Below are positions 2,981-60,196 of a stretch of 64,000 bases of DNA, in pieces (within the stretch, counting starts at the first letter, position 1; every line of letters begins with the position of its first letter). The position numbers and the translations under genes are program-made. The notes beneath the pieces are model-generated. The model worked only from the letters and a program-made list of their open reading frames with translations. It made no database searches and was not told the DNA's origin. Source of the DNA: Hyaloraphidium curvatum SAG 235-1 (taxonomy: Eukaryota > Fungi > Monoblepharomycota). The stretch covers positions 682,001 through 746,000 of the forward strand of contig JAIVFI010000006.1 in the NCBI GenBank assembly GCA_025558095.1, written 5' to 3'.

Positions 2981-3708
2981 GTGTTGCGATGGGAGTGCTC
3001 GTGCAAGAAGGGGTAGCGATGCGCGGTGCGCCGGAGTCCGGAGTCCTGGCCCAAACAATGTCGCTGGAGCGAAGAGGGCGAAGGATGAAGCAACGCGCGG
3101 CTGCGAGCGCAAAGAGTCCGATGTAGAGAGTGCGGGCGCGGGAAGGCGGCCGCGGGCAGCAAACGAGCACGAGGGAGCGCCGGTAGGAGTCGGGGAGGTG
3201 TGTGGCTGCGAGCGCCGCGGCCGAGAGTCCGCGGCAGTTATCCCCAGGATGTCGCAGAAGACGATACTCTGCCCATCATCGCGAGCGAGCATCCGATCTC
3301 ATCTGGAACAGGTCCATCGAGCAACTCTAGGCCCCTGCGCGGCGGGATTCGCCCCGCAGCAGCGCGATGCGGAGCAAGCCGCACATAGGCTACTCCAGAA
3401 TGGGCCGGGGACCATATGTGCTCAGAATCGATACCGATCGCACCCAGGAGCGGTCGGTCCACGCGACATGAGGTGCTTCCCGGGCCTGGAGGCATGTTCG
3501 AAGGCGGGTCGGCGGCGGGCGGGCTCCCGGATCGGGCCGTGTGGGAAGCCGCACTCCCGCGCGCGTTCGCACCAGCGGGGCATAGCCCGCAACACTCCGG
3601 AGCACGGATCGGCAGATCGAAAACGATGCTGCCTCCCATGAAATGGCGCCGGAGCCGCTGAAACGTCTCAGACGAGGAGGTGGAGAGAACGGGCGGTGGC
3701 GAGTCTCC

Positions 3709-5313
3709 ATGCCGGCGGACACAATCGCTTCGCGCCCATGGTGGGAAACCGGCGTCTTCTACCAGGTGTACCCGCGCTCGCTGCAGGATTCGGACGGGGA
3801 CGGCGTCGGCGATCTGCGCGGCATCGCGTCCCGCCTCGACTACTTTGCTGGTCTGGGCGTCGGCTCGCTCTGGCTGTCACCCATCTTCCGCTCGCCGATG
3901 GCGGATTTCGGCTACGACGTGGCGGACTACGAAGATATCGACCCGCTCTTCGGCTCGCTCGAGGACTTTGACCGCCTCCTCGCCGGCGCCCACGCCCGGG
4001 GCCTGCGCGTGATCCTGGACCTGGTCCCCAACCACACCTCGACGGAACACGCGTGGTTCCGGGAATCGCGTTCCTCGCGCAACAGCCCAAAGCGGGACTG
4101 GTACGTCTGGGCCGATCCCTCCCCGGACGGCGGGCCTCCCAACAACTGGATCTCGTACTTTGGCGGGCCCGCGTGGACGCGCGATCCGGCAACGGGGCAG
4201 TATTACCTGCACAACTTCGATCCACGCCAGGCGGATCTCAATTGGCACAACCCTGCCGTGCGGGAGGCGATCCACGGCGCTCTCCGTTTCTGGCTCCGCA
4301 GAGGCGTCGACGGCTTCCGGCTCGACGTGGCTTTCATCCTCCTCAAGGACGCGGAGCTGCGCGACAACCCGCCAGACCCTAACTGGAAGCCGGGGGACAA
4401 CCCCGTCTGGCGGCTGCGGAGGGTCTACTCGCAGGAGCGACCGGGGCACCACGAGCTGCTGGCCGGGATGAGGGCCGTGGCAGACGAGTTTTCGGATCGG
4501 GTGCTGGTCGGCGAGATACAGTACAGCACCGACCCGGCGCTCATGGCGTCGTACTACGGCACCGCGGCAAGACCCGAGGTGCACCAGCCCTTTAACTTTG
4601 CCCTCATCATGTTGCCCTGGGACGCACGCAGGGTGCGCGAGTTTGTCGCGGCCTACGACGCCGCGGTGCCGCCATGGGGCTGGCCGACCTACGTGCTGGG
4701 GAACCACGACCAGGACCGCCTCGTCTCGCGGATCGGGTCGGAGCAGGCCAGGGTGGCCGCCATGTTCCTCCTCACGGTGCGTGGGGCGCCGTACATCTAC
4801 CAGGGCGAGGAGCTCGGCCTGCCCAACGGCGAGGTCGCACCCGAGGACTACCAGGACCCGCAGGGTATCAACGTCGGGATCAGCCGCGATCTTTGTCGCA
4901 CGCCCTTCCAATGGGACGGGAGCTTGAACGCGGGATTCACAACTGGGAAGCCGTGGCTGCCCGTGTCGAGCACCTGGAAGACGCTCAACGTGGAGAGCGA
5001 GGATGCGGACCCCAAGTCGTCCTTGTCTTTGTACCGCCGCCTCCTGGCTCTGCGGCGCACGCACCCTGCTTTGCATGCCGGATCGATGGCGCTGGTCGAG
5101 AGCCCACCGGACGTGCTTGCTTTCGTCCGCAAGGAGGCGGGCGAGCGGTTCCTGGTCGCGCTCAACTTTTCGGCCGGACCGCAGGCGCTTGAGCGGCCGG
5201 AGCTGGGGCGCGGGAAGGTGTTGTTGTCGACGGCGATGGATCGCGAGGAAGCGACCGATCTGGGAGGACTGGCGCTGCGGGCAAACGAGGGCGTGCTGAT
5301 TCAGTTGGACTGA
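3709..5313 (+). CDS. GH13 alpha-glucosidase/oligo-1,6-glucosidase, bacterial type, intronless
   Basis: WW..GVFYQVYPRSLQDSDGDGVGDLRGI, DLVPNHTS, catalytic GFRLD / VGE / LGNHD, YIYQGEELG; ATG at 3709. Confidence 0.93.
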   Translation: MPADTIASRPWWETGVFYQVYPRSLQDSDGDGVGDLRGIASRLDYFAGLGVGSLWLSPIFRSPMADFGYDVADYEDIDPLFGSLEDFDRLLAGAHARGLRVILDLVPNHTSTEHAWFRESRSSRNSPKRDWYVWADPSPDGGPPNNWISYFGGPAWTRDPATGQYYLHNFDPRQADLNWHNPAVREAIHGALRFWLRRGVDGFRLDVAFILLKDAELRDNPPDPNWKPGDNPVWRLRRVYSQERPGHHELLAGMRAVADEFSDRVLVGEIQYSTDPALMASYYGTAARPEVHQPFNFALIMLPWDARRVREFVAAYDAAVPPWGWPTYVLGNHDQDRLVSRIGSEQARVAAMFLLTVRGAPYIYQGEELGLPNGEVAPEDYQDPQGINVGISRDLCRTPFQWDGSLNAGFTTGKPWLPVSSTWKTLNVESEDADPKSSLSLYRRLLALRRTHPALHAGSMALVESPPDVLAFVRKEAGERFLVALNFSAGPQALERPELGRGKVLLSTAMDREEATDLGGLALRANEGVLIQLD

Positions 5314-7884: not shown

Positions 7885-8094
7885 TCGAGAGGTAGAAGTT
7901 TCAAAAGTTTATGCTATTCGGTTCTGACTTTCAGCAGTACTGCTGGGATTCCTCTGATGGACAACTTTCTTTTATAGGTAGAAGCTCATACGTTTATGTG
8001 ACTCGGTTTTGACGTTCGGCAGTAGTTGCGGGGCGTTGGGGTGACAGCGGTCAACTTGTCACCCGCGCTGAGTCACACCAACTCTTTCAGGCCA

Positions 8095-11416: not shown

Positions 11417-13246
11417 TCACACCACGCCGCCAAACAGCTCGGCTTCGGCCTTGGCCTCGTCCGCGACGAAATCGCCGCTGTTCCTCGCCGCCTCGACTTC
11501 ACGACGCTCCTTCTCCGCGTCCTCCTTGTCCAGGCCCCGGAACATGATGTACAGCAGCACTCCGACGATGCCAGCAACGATGGCCAGGGAGCCGTACATC
11601 CACGTGAGGTACGGGTCCTGAGAAACGGGCACGAGGGCGAAGCCGAGCGCCGAGCCGAATGCCGAGGTCAGCAGGAAGAGGGCCATGACAACCGACTTCA
11701 TGCTCGCCGGGGCGCGGGAATAGGCAAACTCGAGGCCGGTGATCGAGGCAAAGACCTCGCTGCACGCGATGAAAAAGTACGCCGGAATCTGCATCCAGAC
11801 CGACACCGAGTTGGGAGCTGCCGCGTCGTAGATGGTCTGCTGCACATAGGCGCTCCAGGCCATGGCAACGGCGGCAAAGAGGAAACCGAGCGAAATGCGT
11901 CCGACGGGGCGGAGAGCAATTCCGCAGCGGCGGAGGCCCGGGTAAACGACCTTGTCGAAGATCGGTATCGCGCAAATGACAAAGAGGGGATCGAGATTCA
12001 CAATGACGTCGTTGGGCACGCCACCAGTGTCCATGGTCGCGGCCTGGGAGACCAGGTTGTTCGTGATCTGGGAATAGACCACCCAATAGACGGGGAAGAA
12101 AACGAAGACCTTGCACGCGCTCAGGGCCCGGCCAACGTCGCGAACGAAAGTGGCGTTGATGTTGGTGCCCTCTGTGTGCAGCGCCGTCGCCTCGGCAGCT
12201 TCGCCAGTATGGCCTGCGGGCTTGCCAGCGGTCTTGGAGGCGACCGCCGCGGCACAGGCCTCAAAGTCCCCGCGGAACCGTCCGAACGACTCGCGGACCA
12301 CCCGCCAGGCATCGACGAGCACCGAAGAGCCGCGCTTTGGCTTGTCCGCCTTGATCGTGCCAGTGCGCCAGCCCGTAAAGAGCACGACGATCGTGACAAG
12401 GAACACCAAAGAGGGAATCAGGTACGCTAGCCAGAAGCCCACGTACTTCTCCGCGTAAGTCGCGGCGAAGATGCCGCAAAGCGAGCCGATGTTGATGGCG
12501 AGGTAAAAGTAGTTGTAGATCGATTGCGTGGTCATGGTCGGGTCGACAACCACATCGCCGCCGGCACGTTCCCGAACGAAAGGCACCTTGTGCGGATACT
12601 GGTCGGCGACGAATGGCGAGACGTTGCTCTTGATGGCGCCGGTTGCGAAGCCGACGACGATCATCGCGATGATGAGGCCGGCCAGGGCTCCTTGCGTCGA
12701 AGTGGCCAGGAGCGGAGGTACCGACGTGCCGACGAGGATCGCGAGGCCGGCCAGGTAGACGAAGCAAAAGTAGAAGATGGTCCGGAACTTGCCCAGCCCG
12801 ATTATGTCGGAAATGATGGCGCCGGCAATCGGACTGACATAGCACAGAAAAGTGAAGAAGAGGTTGAGCGCCGTGGCCGTCGACTGCCCGAGACCGAGAC
12901 CGCCGCGCTGGTCCGGGTTCGACGGGTCGGAAGGGTACGGAAACTCGCTGTAGTTTTGCAAAGGAGCGCTGATGCCATAAAAGGCGAATCTTTCGCTGAG
13001 TTCGGCGAGGACGACGAGCCAGGCAGAGAGGGGAAGCGAGTCGGCGACGTGCCGCAGGGTGGAGAGCTGTTCGTCCGTCGGCACCTTCCCGGGCAGCGGA
13101 GCAGCAAGGTCGGCAACGTCGGCAGAGAGCGAGGGCTCGACCGTCGCCCCGCGCTTGAGCGAAAGGGACATGCGCGTGCGCAGGGTGTCGGTTACGGTCT
13201 CCGGCGCCTCGGGCGCGTTCTTCGCGTTGGCGGTTGTTTCGGCCAT
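11417..13246 (-). CDS. PTR2: POT/PTR2 family peptide transporter (MFS), apparently intronless
   Basis: ELSERFAFYG motif, GAIKSNVSPFVADQY, FYLAINIGS, GLEFAYSRAPASMKS; ATG at 13246. Confidence 0.9.
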   Translation of the reverse strand: MAETTANAKNAPEAPETVTDTLRTRMSLSLKRGATVEPSLSADVADLAAPLPGKVPTDEQLSTLRHVADSLPLSAWLVVLAELSERFAFYGISAPLQNYSEFPYPSDPSNPDQRGGLGLGQSTATALNLFFTFLCYVSPIAGAIISDIIGLGKFRTIFYFCFVYLAGLAILVGTSVPPLLATSTQGALAGLIIAMIVVGFATGAIKSNVSPFVADQYPHKVPFVRERAGGDVVVDPTMTTQSIYNYFYLAINIGSLCGIFAATYAEKYVGFWLAYLIPSLVFLVTIVVLFTGWRTGTIKADKPKRGSSVLVDAWRVVRESFGRFRGDFEACAAAVASKTAGKPAGHTGEAAEATALHTEGTNINATFVRDVGRALSACKVFVFFPVYWVVYSQITNNLVSQAATMDTGGVPNDVIVNLDPLFVICAIPIFDKVVYPGLRRCGIALRPVGRISLGFLFAAVAMAWSAYVQQTIYDAAAPNSVSVWMQIPAYFFIACSEVFASITGLEFAYSRAPASMKSVVMALFLLTSAFGSALGFALVPVSQDPYLTWMYGSLAIVAGIVGVLLYIMFRGLDKEDAEKERREVEAARNSGDFVADEAKAEAELFGGVV

Positions 13247-13306
13247 ACTTTCGTTCGAAGTTGGGAGTTCCAGGAGTGGAATGAGGTCGTCATTGCTCGC
13301 CACGGC

Positions 13307-13312
13307 TTTATA
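13307..13312 (-). promoter_or_regulatory. Candidate TATA box of PTR2
   Basis: TATAAA on the minus strand ~60 nt upstream of the ATG, in an otherwise GC-rich context. Confidence 0.5.
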
Positions 13313-13332
13313 AGGGCCGCGTCGCGGGGATT

Positions 13333-13433
13333 CCAGAAGCTGGCCGTGCTCGGGGCGGAGTTTCTGGAAGCTGTACCTTCGTGGTGGCCAGAAGCTGGCC
13401 GTGCTCGGGGCGGAGTTTTCTGGAAGCTGTGCC
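13333..13433. repeat. Two-copy ~55-bp-period direct repeat upstream of PTR2
   Basis: ccagaagctggccgtgctcggggcggagttt(t)ctggaagctgt starts at 13333 and again at 13388. Confidence 0.9.
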
Positions 13434-13730
13434 GGCGTGGGTGGCGCAGCCAAATTGCAACACGCCCGCCTCATCCCCGAACGATCCCCAAGCAAATCCG
13501 AGGCTTCCTGCTGCAGCTTCGCGTGGCAACGATCGAAAGACGTTTGCTGAGCTACGAGGATGCGTGATGTTTCCATTGAAGTCGACGAAGAGCACCATCA
13601 GCATCGCCTCTGGACACAATTAATCGCCTCTGCGAAGTCTGACAATACAATCCAGTTCTATATCATCTCTGGCTCGGCCTACACGGTCTCACGAATCATT
13701 AGAAGGGCATCGTTCGCAATCCTGGCAGCG

Positions 13731-29345: not shown

Positions 29346-30978
29346 CTAAAGTGTCGGGCAGATGCTATCCAGTGTGAAGAACACGCCCACGCTTCGGAGC
29401 ACGGACCATAGTCCGACCAGCACCGTGATCAGCGCGACCACGAGCGCCCTGATGGCGCCGTAGTCCACCACGAACCCGAGCACCCTCGCCGCCCCTGGAC
29501 CACCCCCGCGTAGCTTCCCAGCGCCGCCTCGTGGGCACGCATGTTTGCAATCACGCCCGAGAGCCTGGGATCGGGGCCCGAGGCGGGATGCGAGAGGATG
29601 AGCAGGGTGCGGATGTGCTGCTGTGCGGCGAGGTAGAGCGAGGAGATGGAGGACACCTCGGAGTTGAGGGAGGCGACGTTCCAGAGATCAAAGAGGAGGG
29701 TGCCGAGGATGTAGAGGAAACAGGCGACCATCCACGCCGGGATGCAAGAGCCGGTCGCCTGCGGGGCCCGAAAATCAACTTTCGAGGTCCGAAAGGGGCA
29801 TGATCAAGGGCATGCTGACTTACGAGAGTAGCTATGGCACCGAAAAGGACAACGGAGGCGAACGAGATCGCACCAGCCACGGGAAATCCTGCAAGGACTC
29901 CGGCAGCCCACCGGGAGGCGAGGTTTCCCTGGAGAGCCAGGTGCGTCTCGGTGGGCCCGGTGTTCTCCAGCAGCTTCCCGTCCTCGGACGGGGATTCGAG
30001 CTGGGCGTGAAACGTATCGAGGAGCCGTCCGAGCGTGAGCTTTGTCGCTCGGTATCGGAGACGCGAAGTTATGCGGCCGATTGCGACGTTCGGGGGCAAG
30101 TACGGTATGACCTCGACATTGAAGAGGAAAATGTCGAGCACTGCGGAGTGGAAGGAGTCATTTTCGACGCTTCGGTCGTGTCCGCCATCGTGCTCACCTC
30201 CCAAAGATGCGATCGTGGCGCCCCATGGTGAGCTCCAAGTCCTGTCCGCGAGCGTAACGAAGGGAGTCCAGAACATGAAGATCCAAATCAGGAACCCGGC
30301 TCCGAGACGGAAGACCAGTTCGAATAGCCGGTACACAAAGGCCGCGCGTGGCAAACCCCCTGCACAAGTCTTGGCGGGACAAGAGCAGAAGCGGTCATTG
30401 GGGAAGTGTTCCAGCAATTCCCCGTCCGGTTTCTGGTTTCCCACGAGATTCGCCCAAGCGACCAAGCCGGCGAAACGCGAGGCAAGGAACTCTTTGGACT
30501 CTCGCAGGCCGGATCTGCCGGGCCAACCCCGCCCACTAAACAGCGCTCCGTAAAAGAAGGAAGCCGCCACGGTGGCAACAGCGGCCGTGCCGCCCGCCAT
30601 CTCCTTTGCACCGAACCGCCCGTCCGCAAAGGGCCAAACCAGGCATATGCACGCCACGAGGCACGCAGAGTGCACGGTGTAGCGCCATTTCCGGGCCGCG
30701 AGCCAGACCGCCATGGCAAAGTGCACCCGCGCGAGGTTCCGGAGGTTCGGCCACGGGACCAGCGCGTCCAGCACGTCGGGCGGAGTGAGCGGGGTGCGGA
30801 GCTTGGCGGCAAAGTCCGGAGGCGCGCCGGAGGTCGGGAAGTTGTCCGCCGGGGGCGCCGGCAGGGGGAACAGCGCGAGCCATCCTTCGGGGCTGAACGG
30901 GGCCGACGCGGTTCCGGGAGACGCGTCGTCGGCTGCCGCCGGTTTCGAAGATTGCGAGACGCGTATCCTCGTCTCCAT
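29346..30978 (-). CDS. Multi-TM protein, GRL/7TMIC-like family, paralogue A (1-nt frameshift near 29493)
   Basis: Introns 30141-30197 and 29759-29823; about 7 hydrophobic segments; C-terminus AARVLGFVVDYGAIRALVVALITVLVGLWSVLRSVGVFFTLDSICPTL* after the frameshift. Confidence 0.65.
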
Positions 30979-44462: not shown

Positions 44463-44649
44463 CCCCAGGCGCGTTGCAGAAGATGGTGAGGTGTCCCGTC
44501 TCAGAGGCAGCAACCAAGGCGCCGACAACGGCTTTGAGGCGCTCTCGCCGGGGTGGCAAGCTCCTCCGCACGTTTCGGATCTAGTTTCCGGACGGAAACA
44601 GGAGAGCCAGCAGTGGTCGATTGCTGACTACAAGATTCTTCGCCTTGAT

Positions 44650-47600
44650 TCAGTACACGTCGTCGAGCATCAGCGTCCGATCTTCCGGCCCCGCCAGGCT
44701 CCCGTCCAGCGGCCTGTACTGCGACCTCCCGCCGCCTCCCGCATACCCGCCCGCCCGGCCGTTGCTCGCCTTGAACACGACCCAATCGTACCCGTCCTGC
44801 GCCCGCTCCCAGAGCCACGTCGCACCGATGGCGATGTAGTGCGCGGCCGTGTGGAACGCGGCGATGGAGTAGTCCACCACCGCGTTGAGCCAGGGCGGCA
44901 GGTTCCCGGAGGAGCGCGACCCGGGCATGAGGCCGAAATCGTCGTCGGGGAGCATGATCCGCGAGTGCTGCTTCCGGTAGTAGTCCAGGAAGGCGATCGC
45001 GGAGCCGAAGATGGCGACGAAGAGCACGATGAGGCCGACGACGCCGCCGACGCCCATGCCGCCGCTCGGAGCCACTGCGAATGTCGTCGTCAGACAACCC
45101 AATCCAACCGAGATCGACAGCACGAGCAAACTCACCGCAAGCGACCATCTCGGTCCCCTTGTCCAGCTCCTCGCCGCCCTGGCACGTGCTCTTGACCATC
45201 TTCCGATACCCCGTGGACAGCTGCGCCCGTCCTCCGATGCACTCGAGCTGCGGCCGCGCCGCCCCGCTCACGAGCACGCACCGGCCGTCCGAGTCCCTCC
45301 GGTAGTTGAAGTCGCACTCAAAGTCGGCCCGCGTGCAGGCACAGTTCTTCTGGACGACCTTGGGCGTCTCCTGGAACTTGTCCCCGACGAAGCAGTCGGC
45401 CTCGCGCTTCTTGCGCCAGTACTGGATCTCGTGGCCAAAGTGGCACTCGGTGTGGTTGGCAGCAGTGGGGCTCCACAGCTCAAAGTCGCTCTTGGACGGG
45501 TCCGACTCGTCCAGCTTGCACTTGCGCGACCGCGCGCCCTCGAAGTTGAGGTGGATCGCCGCCTGCTGGCCGTCCCGGGCGGATCCGACATAGCGGCCAA
45601 AGAGGACAAACTGCTGCGAGGTCGAGTCCGGCTCGGTCGCGATGTCCGTGATGCGGATCTTTTCGTTCATGCTGTCGACGATGCGGTATTCGAGCCACGT
45701 CAGGCCCATGGTGAGCGAGTACAGGACCTTGTCGGTCGGCCCCTCGTCGAACACCATGAGCAGGATCGAGCCGTGGTCGCCGTACTCGAACATGAAGGCG
45801 TCCTTGTGCACCTCGATCCAGGTCCGGCCGGCATCGCGCGTAAGGTACGTGTTGCCGTCGGTGTACTTGGTGAGGTACGGGCCGACGTTGCCCACGCCCA
45901 TCATGAGGCCCGGCGCCGAGAGCTGGCTGAACTGCATCCTCGGATCGCGACGCTCGGTGTACGAGTGGATGTTGAGGGAGCAGCCGCCGGCGCAGGAAGA
46001 GTACGGCGTGCCGTCCACGGCGCGCTCGGGCGGCGTCACGGTCGACCAGGTGGAGCCGTCGTCAAAGGTGATGAGGGTCTTCACCTTCTTGTCCGCTCCC
46101 TGCTCAGCCTCCTTGGGGTTCGTGACCTGGTTGACGAGCGCGATGCCCTGGATGCCCTGCATCTTCTCGAAATCGACGTAGCCCAGCGCGTTGCGGTTCG
46201 TGTTGTCCACGGCGACGCTGTAGTAGGTACCGTTCCAGTTTGAAATCATGAGGCTGCCCCACTCGGAACCGCGCTCGGCATGCGAATAGACGTCGAGGAA
46301 GACGCGGCCGGTCGAGCTCTCCAGCACCGTGTAGCCGTGCGAGGGCACGCGGAAGTTGGGCGGGAACTGCGCCCTGGCAAAGTTGGTGCCGTCCACGGAG
46401 ACAAAGAGGTCCAGGTGGCCGGCTCCGGGCTGCATCTCCGCCACGACCATGAAGCTCTCGAACAGCGCAAAGCCGAGCGAGTTGTCGACGACGACCTGCG
46501 AGCCCTCGCCCGTCTCGCCGTTGGCGAAGAAGTTCTCCGTCCGGAGGAGGCGCAGTCGGTTGTCCTTGAGCGCCCCGCGCTGGTTCCCCTTCTTCTCCTG
46601 GTAGGCCTGGCAGAAGAGCACCGTGTCCGTCGGGTGCTGGAACTGGGCGTCCCGGCCCCACGAGCAGGCCTCAACGTAGGTGGTTAGCGACTTCCAGAAC
46701 CGGCCGCCGTCGGTCGAGAAGTACGCCTCGGTGTGGCAGTCCTGCTCCGACAGGGCGTGGCAACCCTTGATGCTGCCCACGAAGATGAGCCACTCGGGGT
46801 GGTCGCGGTGGAACTTGAGGATGGGCGCCTTCAGGATGTTGGGCTCCAGTGGAAGAAGGATCTCCTTGACCGTCTTGCCGGCGTCGGGCGTGTACCACAG
46901 GTATTTGGACTGCGTGATGAAGTACGCCTAGGGAGGAAGGGGCGTTAGACATCGGCAACGGCAAATTCCGAACCCCACCCACATATCGCCTGTCGTACGG
47001 GTTGGGGATGATGTCGATGACCTTGGTGTCCTTCTCCAGACCGTCGCGGTCCTTCTCTCCGCGATGCGACTTGAGCAGATCGTCCCAGTCCTTGCCCTCG
47101 TTGTCCGACTTCCAAATCTTGCCATCCGAATCCCTGGCCAGCACCGTCGTGGTGTCGACGAACCACGTCCAGTCCTCGATCAGCGAGTCGAACGTGGTCA
47201 CGGTCCGCTTGACGGCCACGGAATCCGAAGGGTCGCTGTCCTGCCCGCAGACCTTTTCGACCTTGCCCGAGAGATCGACCCCGCCCTTGCACGTGCTGAG
47301 GGCGTTCTTGCGGTACCCGCTCGGCGCGGTGTACTTCTCGCCGGGCTTGCAATCCTTCGGGGCATCGGGATCCGCGCCGTACAGCGTGCACTTGCCCGTG
47401 TTCTCGTCGCGCCAGTAGGTCACGTCGCTGCGACATCACCCGTGAGGAACTGAAGGGCCAGAAGCACACGGGGCGATCACTAACCACTCGTAGTCGGCTG
47501 CGCTGCATTCGCAGTCCTCCACGATGACACGGCTATCGGTGTAGAGGTCTCCGATGTAGCAGTCGGCGGTGGGCAGGCGCCTCCACCAGTACGTCCTCCG

Positions 47601-50600
47601 TCCGAGCACGCAGTCGGGCTTGTCGTCCGTCCCGGTCAGAACCCACTTCTCAAAGTCGGCGCTGAAGGTGCACTTGCGCGCAAAGGCCTGCGAAAAGTCC
47701 ACCTGCACCAGGACGGTCTCGCGGCTGCGGCCGAACGCGGACTCGGCGTAGCCGACGAGAAGGAAGCGGAGAGAGGTCCCCTTGGGCTCCGTCGTCACCG
47801 TCTTGACGCGGATCTTGCCGTCCTTGGAGAACTTGTACCGGTACCAGTTGGCGCCGTAATCGAGCGTGAAGAGGAGCTCGTCGGTCGCCGATTCGTCGTT
47901 GACCAGGATGATGACCGAGCCGCGGTCGCCAAACTCCCACTGGTGCGGTCCCTTGGCAATCTCGCGCCAGTGCGCGCCCGCATCCGTCGACATGTACGTG
48001 TCGCTCATCGTGTACGGATTCAGGCGATCTCCGACGTTGCCGACGGCGACCATGATCCCCGGCGCCGACTCGGACGAGAAGAGCGAGCCCATGGTGCTTT
48101 CCGGATCGGTATCGGTGATCGAGTGGATGTGAAGCATGCACTGCCGAGGGAAGGACAATCAGCGATGGCTCCGACCTACTCAGTCAGAGCTCCCACCTTC
48201 GACGACGATGGGCACTTGTACGGCTGACCCAGCGAATCCTTCGACGGCGCGATCCATTCGTTCCACGTCGCGCCGTTGTCGAAGCTCACCACGGAGCCGA
48301 CCTGCTTCTTGTCGCCGGTGCTCGCGCCGGTCGGGTTCAGCACCCTGTTGGCGAGGATCACGCCCTCGACTGCCATCGACTTTTCGTAGTCGACGAGGCC
48401 CCGCGAGTTGCGGTTGGTGTTCTTGAGCGCCTGGGTGAAGAAGGTGCCGTTGCTGTTCGAGACAAAAAGGTTGCCCTGTTCCTGGCCGTGCCGCGTGTTG
48501 CCCGCGACGTCGAGGTAGATGGTGCCCGGGTGCGAATCGAGGAGGGTGAAGCCGTTCTTCTCCACGCTCAGGTACGGCGGGAACTGGGCCTCGGCAAAGT
48601 TGAGCCCGTCCACGGAGACCATGAGCTTGAGCTTCGATCCGTCGTCCTGTCACGGGAGGAAATCAGCACCGCCATCGAACGACAAGCAACAGCCAAACCC
48701 ACCAAGGCCACGACCAGGAAGCCGCTCACGACATACCAGTCCGACACCTGCTCGAACAGCACCCGCTTCGTGCCCGCGTTGGCGTACTCTGCGAACTCGA
48801 CCGGGTTCTCCTTGGGCGACACCAGCCCGCTCTCGAGCTGCTCCTGCCCGCCGAACTTGCCGTCCTTGATCTTCCACCCCGAGCAGTAGACCGAGTCCCG
48901 GGTCAGCGCCGAGGCGGTGAAGTTGACGTCCTGCGCCCAGAGGCACTTGCGCACCCAGGTGTCCCACGGGTTGGTCGACCACGTGCGGCCGTGGTCGATG
49001 CTGGTGTAGGCCAGCGTCTTGCAGTCGCGGCCGGGGCACTTGCCCGCCGGCTGCGCGACCAGGACGAGCCAGTCCGGTTCCGTCGGGTGGAAGTCGAACA
49101 CGGGCACCCCGAGGCGGTTCCACTCGAGGCCCGCGGGGAGCTCCATCTTCCTCAGGCTGCCCGCCTTGTCCTTCTCGGTCGCGTAGCCCTCGAGCCGGTC
49201 CTCGGTGTACCATGTCTCGCCCTTGGCGGTCAAAAAGTATGCCCGCTTCTCGGCCACGTCCGACAGGATCACCATCTCGACCTTGCCGAGGTCCGACAGG
49301 ACCCGCGTCCACTTGCCGCCCTCGTCGCCGCTCCACCAGACCTCCCCCGCGAGCGTCCTGAGGACAACCACGGGCGACCGCTTGAAGTAGCTGATGAAGG
49401 TGATGTCCGCCTCGCTCATGGAGGTGATCTGCGTCGAGATCTTGATCGAAGACGGGGCGTCGCCGATGGTGCCGTTGCTCCGAGGTTCCTCGGGGGCGGG
49501 ACCGATCCCACCGCCTCCGCCGGCGCCGCCGTCCGCCCCGCAGACGCGGTCTACGGGGGCATCGAGCACCTGCCCGCCCTCGCACGCGTCCCCCGGCTTC
49601 TTCACATACGCGGACCGCGAGCTGTACTTCTCCCCGTCGCGGCACCCGCGCGGCATGTCGGGGTCGCGGTTGTCGGGCCACGCCTTGAGCGTGCAGTTGA
49701 GCGGGTCCGACGCCGAGCCCGAGTGCTCGAAGTAGAGGTCGCAGGCGTAGTCGGCGGGGGTGCAGGCGCACTTCTTGACCTCGGTGCGGACGTCCTTGCC
49801 GACCTCGCCGACGTAGCACTCTGCATTGGGCTTTCGGCGGTACCAGCCTGTCCCAAAAGAAACGGTCAGCCACGCGCCGCGAGTGCCGATCGGGCATAGA
49901 ACCCACCGAGCTCCTGGCCCAGAATGCAGTCCGACCCCCCAACGTAGTCCCTCGGCTTCCACAGCTCCATGTCCTCCGCGCCGCACTTGCGCCCCCACAC
50001 GCCGCCGAAATCCAGGTGGATGGCGTGCCAATCCACCGGCCCCTCCTTGCCCTGCCCGTCGTGCGCGTACGCGAGGACGAGGAACTGCGCCGAGCTCGAG
50101 TCCGGCATCGTGAGCACCCTCTCCACCGCGAGCTTCTTGCCCGCCGCCGCGCCCTTGACCTCGTGGTCGAACCACGTGCGCCCGTGGTCGGGCGACCACC
50201 GGATCTGCGACTCGCGCGCCATGACGATGAGGGCGCCGATGTCCCCCACGGCGTACTCCCACTCGCCCTTGCCGACCGCCTTCCACGTGGCGCCGCCGTC
50301 CGTGGAGAGGAAGGTGTCGCTCTCGGCCGTGGGGAGCAGCTTCTTCCCGACCGAGCCGACCCCCAAGAGCACGCCGGGGGCGGGTGAGCTGAAGGTGCTC
50401 TCCCCCGAGATGGACGAGTGCAGGTGCAGGTCGCAGGGATCCGCGGCCGTCAGCGAGCACTTGTACGCCTTGCCCTCGTTGTCCGTCGGCGGCCCGCGGA
50501 GGGGGGCCCATGTGAACCCGTCGTCCCAGGACCAACGGGTGACGACGTCCTTGAACCGCGTGGTGCCCTTCTCCACCTCCTCCCAGTTCTGCACCACGTT

Positions 50601-52121
50601 GGCCATCAGGATGCCCTCGTAGATGCCGCCGCCCTTTCCGATGTCGACGCGCTCGAAGTCGACCTTGCCCGTGGTCGCGTCCCGGTTGGTGTGCTCCAGC
50701 GCGGGCACGTAGCGCGACCCCGTGGCGTCCGAGATGAGCAGGGTGCCGGTGAAGGAGGGGTGCGAGCCCGTGGGGTTGCGGACGGTCGAGGAGAGGTCGA
50801 TGAAGAGCGCGTGCGGGGCCGAGGGGAGGATGGTGTAGGCGTTCTCGCGGATGTTGAAACCCACGGGGAAGCGCGCGCGGCGGAAGGTCTGACCGTCGAC
50901 CGAGACGAAGAGCTCGGCGCCGACGGTGGCCGATTGGGCGGCCTGGAATTGGTCGGCCAGGAAAGCGGGAACGGATCAGCCTGCGTCGTCCGCGGAGACG
51001 GTCCGGCAACCCACCACCGCGACGACCATGAACCTCTCGATCACGCCGAGCCCCACGACCGCGCCGTTCACCACCTCCCCGTCGTCCCCGCCGCCGAGCG
51101 TCACGGTGGTCTTGCTGCCCTTGAAGAACTCGCCCGAGTACACGAGCCGGGGCAGCTTCCCGTCCGCGCCGGCCTCGGTGCAGTACACGGCCTTGTCCGG
51201 CGGGTTCGTGAAGGCGGGGTTGCTCCGCGCCCACACGCACGAGGTGGTGTACTCGAGCAGGGGCTCGAAGGAGGGCGAGGTGGAGGTGGAGACGAAGGTG
51301 TCTTCGTGGCACTTTTGCGCCAGGCCCAGGAACACGGGGACGCACTTCTTGCCTGCAAAATGGCGCTCATCTTAGCAGACGTTGTCTAGGTAGCCGACGT
51401 TGTGCCACCCACCCTGAAAGAGGAGGTAGTTGCTGTTTCCCGAGTGGAAGCCGAGCATGTAGCCCGCGGTGTCGAACGCCGGCGCCAGGGGCGTATCGAA
51501 CGTGGTCCACGACAAGCCCTTGTTCCTCGTGATGTAGTGCGTCGTCGAGTCGGTCAGGACAAAGGCCTGTGGGTGAAACGCGTTCAAAATCAAGTCGCGC
51601 GACTCGGCGACCCGCCGCTGAGGCGACACCCACCGTGTCGGGATCGTGCTCGTGCCTCATCAGCACTTTTGCTGCCCCCTTCGGTATGTCTGCGGTCATT
51701 GTCCACGTCTTGCCCTGGTCCGCGGAGCGGTACAGCGCCTCCGCGTCGCCCGAGAGGATGAGGATGACCTGACGACGGGGCAGCCGGGAACGGGGCGCCG
51801 GAATGAGCACATGAAATGCTGCCTGTGCCCCGCAGTTGCGCGCACCTCCGAGTCCTTGAAGTAGACCAGCCTGCGCGGCGCGTGGTCGAAGCGGACGGCG
51901 GTCTCGACGACCTTGGAGGCCATGTCGGCCGGCGGGGCCGCGGCGGCCCCGCTCCACCCGAGCGCAAGCAGCGCCGCCGCGCAGCCGAGCAGGAACGCCG
52001 CCCCGAGGAACCGGCCCCGTGCGGGCGCGCCCCGCGGTGTCGGCGGCGCGCGCGGCCTCTGCCGCCCCTCGGCCGCCCCCCGCGCGCGGCCCGCCGGCGC
52101 GGCGTGCTCCGCTCGCTCCAT
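44650..52121 (-). CDS. VPS10: Vps10/sortilin-type vacuolar sorting receptor with three Vps10 modules
   Basis: N-terminal hydrophobic segment; many Asp-box (SxDxGxTW) repeats; three NRN/NRD..G.VD[FY]E cores and three Cys-rich 10CC regions; TM GVVGLIVLFVAIFGSAIAFL; cytosolic tail ending MLDDVY. Confidence 0.92.
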
Positions 52122-56372: not shown

Positions 56373-57025
56373 TGAAGGGCAGAATTCCACTCGCGTCCTC
56401 CCTGTCGACCCGATCGGTCGAACCAGCGCGGTTGGGCTATGGGCGTCAAGGCGGCAGGCCTGCAGCGGAAGATGGACCACTTTATACTCCGAGCCTAGAT
56501 CATCGCGCTTGCGACGTCGCGGTCGCTGCCCTAGCAGCGGCCCAACCCGACCATCCGGGTCTCCTCGGCGCGAGTGAACCGCGCGAACCCTCGTCGGGCT
56601 CGGGTTAGCAGACAGATCTTTCTTGAACCTCAGCCCGCAAACACTCTCAATGGTGATGGTGACCGTGACCCATCCCCTCATTACCCCGAACAGCGCGACA
56701 ACAATCGTCAAGACCGTCGCCAATACGGTCCTTAGTACCCCGACGATGACCGGCGCGCCCATGAACCGTCCCCGCAACCCGTCGGTTTCCGAGGCGGCAG
56801 AAAGCAAGATTCCCGATCGAAGAGCTGCCACCCCAGCACTTCCCTTCCAGGTGGAAGCGAAAGCAGCAATCGACGTATTTCCCCTGCCGCATCCCGGTGC
56901 AGCTCTGCGATCCGATCCGCCCGCGCGTGGGCCCTGGTCCGCGGCGCGCGATGACAAGCGCGCGGCTGTTTATCTGTCATCCCTGACTAGAGCTGGAAGC
57001 CAGACACTCTGCCACTACGAGCCAG

Positions 57026-58532
57026 ATGACCGAGGAAGCAAAAGCCGACTTCCGCCCCGCGGAATGGCTCGCATTGTTCCCCGCGCCGGCACCCCCGCTG
57101 CGCTCGTTCGGGAATGTGTCTCCCGCGTTCCCCGACGACGCTCCTCGCGCGGCCGACCCGCTGACGCGCGACGGAATTCTGCGGGATGTCGACGGTGCCG
57201 CTTGGCTTGCCGCATGGCCCGCGTTGCGGCTGCACGCGGCCCTGCCGGGGTGGCACGCGGCCGCCTTGTTTGCCGTCGCAGGAGCGGCAGCGGTCGCCCT
57301 CCTCGGCATCGTGGTTCCGATTTCGGGGGCGCGCTTCGCCGCCAAGGACATCGGCATAGGCCTTGCCGCTGTCGTCTTCGTTTACGTCGCGAACGTGATC
57401 ATGTTCGCTGCCTACGGCCCTACAAACGGGTCGAATCTGCTCCGGAAGGGCCTGCTCGAGTTCTCTCCTCTCGGGGCTGTCTGCCGGTGGCTGCGCCTCG
57501 TCCGTGCTGCGGATGCGGACAACCCTTCAAAGGGCAGCCTGGACACTCTGGTGGACCACGTTCCCGGCGACGAGGATTGCGCATGTGCTTCATGCTGCGG
57601 ATGGTTGGAGAAATCCGGAGGCGTCCTGTCACTCGTTGACGTGCTCGTCAACGTCGTTATGACATGGGCTCTCTGCCTATTCACGGTCTACACGCCACTC
57701 GTAAGTTATGGTGGTGCAATCTGGTCCTCCCCGTACGGTGGCCTCCTCGGCTCGCTCTGCATTCTCGCCTGGGGCTCTGCGTTGCTATCCCAAATGGGAG
57801 CCCGGCCCCTGCTTGTGGCCAACGTTGCCTACACGACCTTGGAGCGCCGGCTGCATTGCCGAGCGGTGGCCGTGGCCATGGCCGACTTGCTCGGCCGTTT
57901 CCACGCCGCTGCGGGCGACGGCGAGGAGCCCCCCCGGCTCCGTTCGTGGCTGTACGTCAGGCTGCACTATCGTTTCGCCGCCATGTGCCGCTTCCGACGC
58001 CAGCAGGACATGCTCGTTGTCTCGCGGCTGTACGGCATGATGGAATTGCCAGGGGTGCTCGTCTTTACTGCACTCTATGCGGTCGGTGCCGTCATCTCCG
58101 CCGACACGCACGCGCTTGCTCACTCTTCTCGTCTTGCAGGCTGTCGGACGGTGCATCTCCGCCTGGCAGCTCGCCTACCTGGTCCATGCCGTCGTCTACT
58201 TCATCATAAACACCATCAACCTCGCCTCCCGCAACGCTCTCATCGACGCCGTGGCGGGCGTGTACACCGACGCGCAGCGGGAGCTCCGCGCGCTCTCGCT
58301 CTCTGCCGGCCCGGGCCCCTTGGCAGCGGAGCTCGCCCTGCACGACGCGACGATATCGTCGTTCCTCGACGTCTCGCGTCACCGCGCCCGGCTTTTCGGG
58401 TTCGTCGTCTCGTTCGGGACTGCAAGGACCATGCTGGTGACCCTGCTCACGGTCTGCGTGGCGCTGTGGACCGTGCTGCGGGCGTTCGGCGTGGGCGTGA
58501 CCCTGGAGAGCTTCTGCCCGTCGCAACCGTGA
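57026..58532 (+). CDS. Multi-TM protein, GRL/7TMIC-like family, paralogue B (intact)
   Basis: Intron 58082-58139; C-terminus HDATISSFLDVSRHRARLFGFVVSFGTARTMLVTLLTVCVALWTVLRAFGVGVTLESFCP. Confidence 0.75.
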
Positions 58533-58634
58533 GGGCGCAAAGGACCGACTCTGTGGGTAAAGTACTGTGGCCGGGAGGTGCGGAAAGCTGGAAGACAGGC
58601 TAGCAGTTCGCGATGCAAGATCGATTGAAACGGA

Positions 58635-60196
58635 TCAACTCCGCCTCGACACCCTGACCTCCAGCTCCCCCGCCGCGGGTGCCGACGTCAGGTACGTCCG
58701 CACGTCCAGCGGCCTCCCCCTCAGGAGGTCCTTCCTGACCAGCGCGAGGTCGAACGCCCGCACGACGTTGGCCAGCAGCACCCGCAGCTCGATCAACGCG
58801 AGCCCGGAGCCGATGCAGTTCCTCGACCCGCGCGAGAACGGAAGCCATGAGAACTTGACGTCCGCCTCCTTGATCCCCTTTTCCCCGATCCACCGCTCCG
58901 GGACGAAATGGTCGGCGTCGGGCCCGAAGACGGCCTTGTCGCGGGCCATCAGGCCGTTGGCAAAGGTGCACGAGACGCCCGGGGGGATGAATATCCGCGG
59001 GTCCGTCGGGTGCCGGAACCCGGGCTCGGGGACGATCCGGCGGGTGATGTAGAAGGTGGTCGGCAGCAGGCGGAGGGATTCGTTGATGACGGCGTTGATG
59101 TAGGGCAGGTCCTTGAGCATCTCGTTGGTCAGCAGGTCGGAACGCGTGATGTAGTGCTGCTTGGCGGCAGCGTCGACCTCGGCACGGAGGGCGGAGAGCT
59201 TCTCCGGGTTCAGGAGCAGCTGGTAGGTCGCGAACGAAAGCTGGTGCGCGGTGGTTTCATCGCCGGCGACGATGAGCATCTGAGGCAACCAGATGAGACT
59301 AACGTCTCTCGGATCGCGAGAGAAGGGCCACAAACCGTGCAGTTGACGGCCACCTCGTCGTCCGTGAGCTTGTCCCCTGTCTCCGGATCGACAGCGTCGC
59401 ACATCCTCTGGAGCAAATCCTCCCGCGGCCCCGTTTTGCCGCTGCGCCGGTCCTTGACCACCTTCAGCGAGTACCGCTCCATGAAGAGCGCTGACTCGAT
59501 GCCCTCCCGGACCGTTTTGACGTAGCGGTAGGCGTACGGCAGGAGCCGCCCCAGGAAGTTGGCGAACATCGAGGTCCGCACCATCCTCTCGGCGTGCTCG
59601 AGCACCTCCGAATGGCCCTGCTTAACCATCCCCCAGCGTTCCCCGAACGCGACCTCGCCGATGACGTCTCCCGTGAACAGCCCGTACATCTTCAGGATGT
59701 CCACCGAGCCCCCCGCGTCCGCGAAGCTTCCCAGCTTGTCTAGAAAGTCCCGAACGACCTCGAGCACGATCGGCTCAATCGAGTTGAGCGACCTTATCGA
59801 GAAGGCCGGGCTGAGCTTCCTCCGGAGCGCCTTGTGCTGGTCCGGATCGATGTGCGAAAAGAGCGACCGCGCGCCCTGCCTGTCGGCGCGGTAGATGGCC
59901 GGGTCCTTGGGCCAGCCGTTCTGCGCCAGCGCGGCCTTTGCGATTTCCGGGTCCGCCACGATGACCATGTTGGGCAGCGACCGCACGACGGGGCCGTAGC
60001 GGGCCACGTAGCCCTTTGCGGTCTCGTGCCGCTTGCCGCGGAACCCCTGGGCCAGCAGCACGGGCAGGCTGATGAACCACGTGTTGCTCCACCACGGCCC
60101 GGGGAGGTGCGACAGCGGGCTGCGGAAGACGGCCGAGAGCGTGCGGAGGAAGAGGAGCGTGGCGATGGCCAGCGCGAGGGCGGAGAGGAGCTCCAT
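58635..60196 (-). CDS. Cytochrome P450
   Basis: N-terminal TM + PGP, AGDETT I-helix, ESLR, PERW, PFSRGSRNCIG heme motif; one intron near 59280-59335. Confidence 0.95.

Follow-up and report, generated by a model that had tools for sequence, protein, structure and literature searches.

What kind of protein is encoded at positions 57026-58532 of the stretch of Hyaloraphidium curvatum DNA analysed here, and how are its many relatives in this fungus to be understood? The stretch, called the window below, is 64,000 nucleotides long and corresponds to positions 682001-746000 of contig 6 in a 31.9-Mb assembly of 55 contigs. The original prediction, made from the letters of the window, was that the gene and a second copy nearby encode channels resembling the insect odorant and gustatory receptors. 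These receptors belong to the 7TMIC superfamily, which we take to comprise insect odorant and gustatory receptors (ORs and GRs), GRLs, DUF3537 proteins and PHTF. The reading that we favour, with a probability of about 60%, is that the locus encodes an expressed 482-residue subunit of the 7TMIC fold, with seven transmembrane (TM) segments and its N-terminus inside, that its paralogues in H. curvatum number several hundred, and that it is a proposed ligand-gated channel.

A spliced gene and its paralogue in the window

The gene at 57026-58532, referred to here as copy 2, has two exons, a start codon at 57026 and a TGA stop at 58530-58532 (Table 1). The open reading frames, the intron and the GenBank annotation agree on the coordinates that had been proposed for it: the spliced model has the same sequence as GenBank protein P0001 ([quoted passage not shown], 482 aa), which reads ...LYA|AVGRC... 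across the splice junction. The intron interrupts the codons for the outer loop that joins TM5 to TM6, which is very short. In RNA run X1, a 27-Mb contig set from the same organism, one contig of 1339 nt spans 57246-58080 and 58139-58620, with GT..AG ends at the skipped 58 nt and 255 nt on the shorter side, and a second covers 56700-57182, in the region of exon 1. As the former skips exactly 58082-58139, copy 2 is transcribed and spliced as modelled. Its neighbours within the window are an amylase, a POT transporter, a sortilin and a P450.

Table 1. Features of the two gene copies, in window coordinates.
Feature	Position	Strand	Description
Copy 2 exon 1	57026..58081	+	Residues 1-352; open reading frame translation 100% identical to P0001; cytoplasmic N-terminus with EWLALFP motif, TM1-TM5, IL1, IL2
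Copy 2 His/Cys loop codons	57557..57595	+	H178, D182, C185, C187, C190 (H-x3-D-x2-C-x-C-x2-C); in IL1
Copy 2 intron	58082..58139	+	58 nt, phase 0, GTCGGT..CAG; RNA contig skips exactly 58 nt
Copy 2 exon 2	58140..58532	+	Residues 353-482 and stop; opens AVGRCISAW; EL3 with C357, long TM6, TM7a, turn, TM7b, outer tail with C478
Copy 2 TM6	58161..58307	+	Single 49-residue helix 360-408, reaching well past the membrane on the cytoplasmic side; hydrophobic part 357-382
Copy 2 TM7a and turn	58317..58412	+	Helix 412-433; turn 434-443 RARLFGFVVS; G439 at least 90% conserved
Copy 2 TM7b	58413..58484	+	Helix 444-467; T456 invariant; R448, R466 and G469 at least 90% conserved
Copy 1	29346..30978	-	ATG 30978, stop 29346; exons 30978-30198, 30140-29824, 29758-29346
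Copy 1 intron 1	30197-30141	-	GTGAGC..CAG, phase 1
Copy 1 intron 2	29823-29759	-	GTAAGT..CAG, phase 0; same place as copy 2 intron, directly before ATGSCIPAW
Copy 1 frame change	29489..29515	-	Last exon, G-rich run; spacing, when set against copy 2, consistent with the loss of one base

The second copy lies where it had been placed, on the minus strand. When the two copies were compared exon by exon with BLASTP, the N-terminal parts gave 32% identity (E 6e-24), the middle parts E 6e-5 and the TM6 region E 5e-11, and over the final 46 residues identity is 54% (E 2e-16). The claim that these are two dispersed paralogues is therefore well founded, the similarity being far beyond chance. The motifs quoted for the pair (EWLALFP, H.P.D..C.C, TP.V......WSSP.G, A[TV]G.CI.AW and AR..GFVV...LW.VLR...CP) are found in both copies, and so is the phase-0 intron directly before A[TV]G.CI.AW. 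Overall, the copies are about 28% identical, which is typical of a random pair in the family, and a recent tandem duplication is therefore ruled out as the origin of the pair.

The statement that both copies share the C-terminal motif holds for copy 2 as it stands, but for copy 1 only after a change of frame between 29515 and 29489. In copy 1 the C-terminus ARVLGFVV...CPTL is in another frame than the preceding HEAALGSY, with the turn and TM7b encoded downstream of the frame change. The corresponding GenBank model, P0109 (475 aa), has the same two introns, keeps the first frame and runs to a stop at 29429, so that it lacks TM7b; its match to the family profile stops at position 437 of 484. Analyses at full length were run on the database records P0001, whose sequence is that of the spliced model, and P0109. 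As assembled, copy 1 has thus lost TM7b by a frameshift, and it is either a pseudogene or the product of an assembly error.

Topology and conserved residues

An alignment of 89 full-length paralogues, mostly 470-545 aa long and with a mean column identity of 23%, provides the basis for the topology. Seven hydrophobic segments were found in the four paralogues inspected, and in the AlphaFold2 (AF2) model of P0001 the helices assigned by DSSP are 77-99, 106-134, 192-220, 236-263, 330-355, 360-408 and 444-467. Median lengths of the loops IL1, IL2 and IL3 are 71, 75 and 65 aa over the 89 paralogues, against 6, 15, 4 and 14 aa for EL1, EL2, EL3 and the tail. The three long loops, which are on the same side as the N-terminus, hold on average 25.4 Lys and Arg residues compared with 1.5 on the opposite side. 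By the positive-inside rule, the N-terminus is predicted to be inside, with inner loops much longer than outer ones. The seven-helix, N-terminus-in topology that had been forecast is in this way upheld computationally.

In the same model TM4 runs on into a cytoplasmic helix (267-298), and a further helix (309-327) leads into TM5. A cytoplasmic anchor domain and a split TM7 are hallmarks of 7TMICs (PMC9998090), and at the level of secondary structure, as assigned by DSSP in the AF2 model, both anchor-domain-like long helices and a TM7 divided into TM7a and TM7b are present. The length of P0001 also falls within the range of about 350-500 aa that is criterion ii for 7TMICs in Benton 2020 (PMC7746228).

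Conservation is distributed unevenly along the protein. TM7b (1.63 bits of entropy) and the turn before it (1.77 bits) are the most conserved parts, while TM1-TM5, at about 3.0 bits, are the most variable. Residues T449, T453, T456, G460 and S463 share one face of the TM7b helix. Outside TM7b the best-conserved regions are cytoplasmic, namely the N-terminal EWLALFP motif, the His/Cys loop and IL2. Seven residues are invariant in the 89 paralogues: H178, C185, C187, C190, C357, N384 and T456.

Four of these invariant residues belong to the His/Cys loop, in which D182 is at least 90% conserved. Since the loop lies on the side rich in Lys and Arg, that is, the cytoplasmic side (89 paralogues), H178, C185, C187 and C190 would most likely hold a structural or regulatory Zn2+ rather than form disulfides. 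A different role is suggested for the invariant C357, in EL3, and for C478, in the outer tail, which is at least 90% conserved. Both are outside. The model has two short strands, 357-359 and 471-473, and each cysteine belongs to one of them or is separated from it by a few residues, so that C357 and C478 would most likely form a disulfide. The His/Cys loop and the C357/C478 pair are specific to the Hyaloraphidium family.

Fold and relation to known 7TMICs

The AF2 model of P0001, which was computed from the 89-paralogue alignment of a single species, has a mean pLDDT of 91.7 and a pTM of 0.91. A Foldseek search of the PDB with this model returned insect GRs and ORs as all of its top 10 hits, with probabilities of 0.72-1.0, marginal E-values (3e-3 to 0.15) and TM-scores of 0.25-0.37. 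The alignment keeps the same order along the entire chain; residues 54-468, for example, align with 12-469 of MhOR5. With two independent aligners all top hits are 7TMICs, and no other fold covers more than about half of the model. For the model of copy 1 (pLDDT 87), too, the top hits are insect OR/GR chains, so that the models of both copies agree with the 7TMIC fold that had been proposed. Cnidarian and echinoderm clusters modelled in the ESM Atlas match as well, with TM-scores of 0.60/0.70 and 0.60/0.67. When language-model features are compared, the named clusters nearest to the family are mostly DUF3537, 7tm_7, Trehalose_recp or SRR, DUF3537 (score 0.92) being the commonest Pfam family with seven of the nearest 30, although recognition is low (1887) and these neighbours are a lead only. 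On the basis of the models, we consider the Hyaloraphidium family to have the predicted 7TMIC fold and to be probably a remote homologue.

Primary sequence gives no such link. Pfam yields no consistent match for the exons, and none of the 89 full-length paralogues matches any 7TMIC Pfam family at E<=1. Searching the whole genome with PF12056 (DUF3537) and PF08395 (7tm_7) gave no matches, which is weak evidence as the control genomes were silent too. Against the sequences in the PDB, the family profile finds only noise, the hits at E 0.24-0.26 being an opsin and a Ca channel. The expectation that no unrelated family would lay claim to these proteins is borne out by the same searches, since neither Pfam, applied to the exons and the 89 paralogues, nor the profile search of PDB sequences gave anything consistent.

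The motif (T/S)Yhhhhh(Q/K/E)(F/L/M) of TM7 is the only primary-sequence hallmark described for animal GRLs, and is regarded as diagnostic but not definitive (PMC7746228). It is absent from the last 47 residues of all 89 members, with at most two to three of its four positions present at any register. Conserved phase-0 introns near the 3' end, a trait of animal GR and GRL genes, are likewise lacking, the shared phase-0 intron of the family being situated between TM5 and TM6; in the genome search with the C-terminal exon, many copies show reading frames that run on without a break for more than 500 aa. One hallmark put forward in the original prediction as established, a (T/R)-x-F-G-F-x-(V/I)-D turn, is absent from the 7TMIC literature searched, which names only the TM7 motif, and we have dropped it from the argument.

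Could the family, then, be a lineage-specific set of seven-helix proteins unrelated to 7TMICs, its resemblance being due to convergence, to a generic match between helical bundles or to a bias of AlphaFold? Against the 7TMIC reading stand the lack of a link in sequence to any known 7TMIC family, the marginal Foldseek E-values and the single-species alignment. However, a chance resemblance would hardly be expected to give 7TMICs alone as the best matches of both aligners, in collinear order along the entire chain, or to combine long inner loops and an inside N-terminus with a TM6 of 49 residues and a TM7 that is split. Most language-model neighbours are 7TMIC families, and known distant 7TMICs are also without sequence similarity and the TM7 motif (PMC7746228, PMC9998090). 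Taking these points together, we regard an unrelated family as improbable.

If the proteins are 7TMICs, they differ from each of the groups described so far. Insect ORs, GRs and Orco (7LIC MhOR5, 8V00 AaegOR10, 8V3D AgamOR28, 8VC1 BmGr9, 8JM9 Gr43a and 8Z9A Orco) show 8-11% aligned identity to the family. Unlike the insect ORs and GRs, this family has no Pfam 7tm_6 or 7tm_7 match and no TM7 motif, it has an IL1 of about 70 aa with the invariant His/Cys loop and a conserved N-terminal EWLALFP, and its host is a fungus. Many insect ORs have a longer EL2, whereas the outer loops of the family are very short.

Within the fungi, the closest comparison is with the chytrid GRLs SpunGRL1 and SpalGRL1 (Benton et al. 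2020, PMC7746228). Like the Hyaloraphidium proteins, these come from early-diverging fungi, have 350-500 aa, seven TM segments and an inside N-terminus, hardly conserve the TM7 motif and lack a 3' intron at the animal position (PMC7746228). The chytrid GRLs are, however, single genes in each species that were found by BLAST similarity to GRLs (PMC7746228), while the present family numbers hundreds. The lack of detectable similarity to GRL and DUF3537 profiles sets the family apart from the Spizellomyces GRLs as these have been described; by sequence, single GRLs in two Spizellomyces species are the only ones reported from fungi (PMC7746228). In the survey of Himmel et al. 2023 the fungi with 7TMICs are Chytridiomycota and Blastocladiomycota, and Hyaloraphidium, large fungal repertoires and a His/Cys motif all go unmentioned (bioRxiv 10.1101/2023.08.30.555482). 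Class-B (PHTF-like) 7TMICs are described as stereotyped 7TMICs in which the loop from TM2 to TM3, IL1, is lengthened by an addition (bioRxiv 10.1101/2023.08.30.555482). The IL1 of the Hyaloraphidium family, with a median of 71 aa, is enlarged too. Plant DUF3537 proteins (PF12056) are, like the family, predicted members of the superfamily without the GR TM7 motif (PMC7746228), but they form small families of 4-12 genes and have a long IL3, and the Hyaloraphidium proteins do not match the PF12056 HMM. In the searchable literature, no paper pairs Hyaloraphidium with “gustatory”, and the sole paper tying 7TMICs to Chytridiomycota does not mention Hyaloraphidium.

A family of several hundred members and its possible role

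The suggestion that the two copies belong to an expanded repertoire proved correct far beyond a pair. When the genome was searched in six frames with exon 1, at least 111 matches were obtained at E<=0.01 (115 scored of 445 first-look candidates). Of 534 first-look candidates for the C-terminal exon (130 aa), 150 were scored and every one matches, the weakest at E 1.6e-18. At least 150 genomic loci match the family, some family counts being inflated by duplicated contigs (C30 and C48 have identical scores, as have C17 and C47). In an exhaustive search of 1.84 billion representative proteins, with a profile built on four close paralogues, the matching clusters (50% identity) number 364 at E<=1e-3, of which 131 pass E<=1e-30. 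The family thus has several hundred members. It is not, as had been thought, unannotated, as its genes are present in the databases as “hypothetical protein”.

The source organism is H. curvatum in all 19 of the named hits sampled (9 + 10), every one a “hypothetical protein”. A word-indexed protein search, run with one sequence and with the 4- and 89-sequence alignments and reaching close relatives only, as it is capped at 8,000 candidates, had only the close H. curvatum subfamily among the matches listed, and a limited metagenome scan with the 4-sequence alignment produced 203 pattern hits, none of which was confirmed. Judging from the 19 named hits, the family is likely to be confined to H. 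curvatum.

Hundreds of copies in a 32-Mb genome could also point to a selfish or repeat-borne gene, carried by mobile elements or amplified as junk reading frames. Several contigs carry close paralogues in inverted pairs with 11-16 kb between them, about one in ten of the exon-1 genome matches contains stops, and frameshifts occur. Against this, the copies are old and diverged and yet keep seven invariant residues in 89 members. Invariance of this kind, at 23% mean column identity, indicates selection on the protein. No transposase-type domain was found in the family (Pfam, 89 paralogues), copy 2 is transcribed and correctly spliced, and the genes next to it are ordinary host genes. On the strength of divergence, invariant residues, splicing and ordinary neighbours we reject an origin as a mobile element, and we consider any selfish origin highly improbable.

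What such a family would do can be suggested by analogy with the solved ORs and GRs, from which we infer ligand gating, ion conduction and a receptor role. Subunits would form tetramers through the cytoplasmic extensions of TM4-TM7a, and TM7b, with its conserved Thr/Gly/Ser face, would line a cation pore at the centre. The pore would then be opened by a small ligand sitting in the outer half of the TM1-TM6 bundle, which is variable. The repertoire as a whole could serve as an array of environmental chemosensors in a non-motile planktonic fungus. H. curvatum is described as an atypical non-flagellated member of the Monoblepharidomycota (PMC8371127), and any sensing would therefore feed growth or physiology rather than swimming or chemotaxis.

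It could also be that the proteins are true 7TMIC homologues but neither ligand-gated channels nor chemoreceptors, acting instead as channels, constitutive or regulated, of internal membranes, as scaffolds or in recognition of self and non-self, with the number of copies reflecting an arms race. The function of most non-insect 7TMICs is unknown (PMC9998090), the organism lacks flagella (PMC8371127), and the best-conserved parts of the protein apart from TM7b are cytoplasmic. The tiny outer loops (4-15 aa) might be thought to favour such a role too. Insect ORs, however, bind their ligands inside the helix bundle, as established OR and GR structures show, and long outer loops are not needed; by analogy, short ones would be no obstacle to a receptor function. 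Moreover, variable TM1-TM5 together with a conserved TM7b is the pattern expected of receptors with diverse ligands and one pore, and a set of several hundred diverged members, broken ones among them, is reminiscent of the way chemoreceptor families evolve by birth and death. We therefore judge a non-chemoreceptor role rather unlikely, though worth keeping in mind, and prefer the reading of the family as ligand-gated channels. An extension of the preferred reading is that H. curvatum has independently built a several-hundred-strong, chemoreceptor-like 7TMIC repertoire with a new Zn-binding HCCC module in IL1 that couples the channel to intracellular regulation; this we put forward tentatively, at somewhat worse than even odds.

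The 7TMICs known from outside animals are single genes or belong to small families, and their function is unknown. If our reading is true, the H. curvatum family would be the largest non-animal 7TMIC repertoire reported in the searchable literature, on the scale of the insect OR and GR families combined and amounting to about 3% of genes, assuming some 13,000 genes per 32-Mb genome. Large ionotropic chemosensory repertoires would then have arisen outside animals, without neurons or motility. A culturable fungus with a haploid-sized genome of 32 Mb would be a tractable system in which to address the role of the ancestral 7TMIC fold in a unicellular organism, and it bears on whether ligand-gated channel function predates animals and on birth-and-death expansion of receptor families outside nervous systems. 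The His/Cys loop is a testable addition specific to the family. More generally, structure prediction from an alignment of paralogues from one species can de-orphan a large family of “hypothetical proteins”. Expression may extend beyond copy 2: other X1 contigs give short matches of 90-95% over its TM7 region, a hint that further paralogues are transcribed as well.

Copies and intron distribution in the family

The nearest relatives of copy 2, at 48–55% identity, occur as opposite-strand pairs with a spacing of 11–16 kb on four contigs of the H. curvatum assembly (G000), an arrangement that points to two genes having been copied together by segmental duplication. In two cases, family loci on separate contigs (C30 and C48; C17 and C47) have identical scores. 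Duplication of contigs in the assembly, or the presence of haplotigs, is the probable cause, and the family copy counts are therefore likely to be slightly too high.

Across the genome, many family members have an open frame longer than 500 aa that runs unbroken through the position of the TM5/TM6 intron, the phase-0 intron common to both window copies, while in other members exon-sized frames of 130–140 aa start exactly at this position. Thus, only some family members carry the intron.

Coordinates of features in the window and of family loci in G000
Feature	Location	Strand	Remark
Alpha-amylase	window 3643-5313	+
POT-family peptide transporter	window 11417-13576	-
Frame change, copy 1	window 29489-29515	-	immediately ahead of turn and TM7b (last helix)
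Sortilin/Vps10-domain ORFs (two)	window 44501-46780, 48568-51345	both -	gap ~1.8 kb
Segments of copy 2 matched by metagenome contigs	window 57354-57504, 57648-57798, 58239-58389
Cytochrome P450 gene	window 58607-60196	-	convergent with copy 2
Opposite-strand pairs	C4:860816/872276, C29:36395/52025, C30:47053/60694, C46:130685/147565
Equal-score pairs	C30:60694-61734 and C48:16243-17283; C17:637745-638644 and C47:83214-84113

Copy 1 and the neighbouring genes

The GenBank model of copy 1 (P0109) continues in the wrong frame as far as a stop at 29429; the frame change itself would reflect a pseudogene or else an assembly error in a homopolymer run. The RNA contigs of copy 2 and the P450 gene end and start about 15 nt or less apart (58620 and 58607). 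The alpha-amylase, POT transporter and sortilin/Vps10 ORFs are ordinary host genes.

Viral fold matches and environmental occurrence

The third row of the ESM Atlas fold search was a 63-protein cluster in which viral sequences, chiefly from Nucleocytoviricota, make up 57%. The AlphaFold2 model of the copy 2 protein (P0001) aligns to this cluster with TM-scores of 0.50/0.71 over 303 residues, and its members may be giant-virus 7TMIC-like proteins.

Contigs of 151 nt in two 2024 freshwater metagenome runs (X2 and X3) match copy 2 at 99–100% identity, which places H. curvatum, or a strain very close to it, in those samples.
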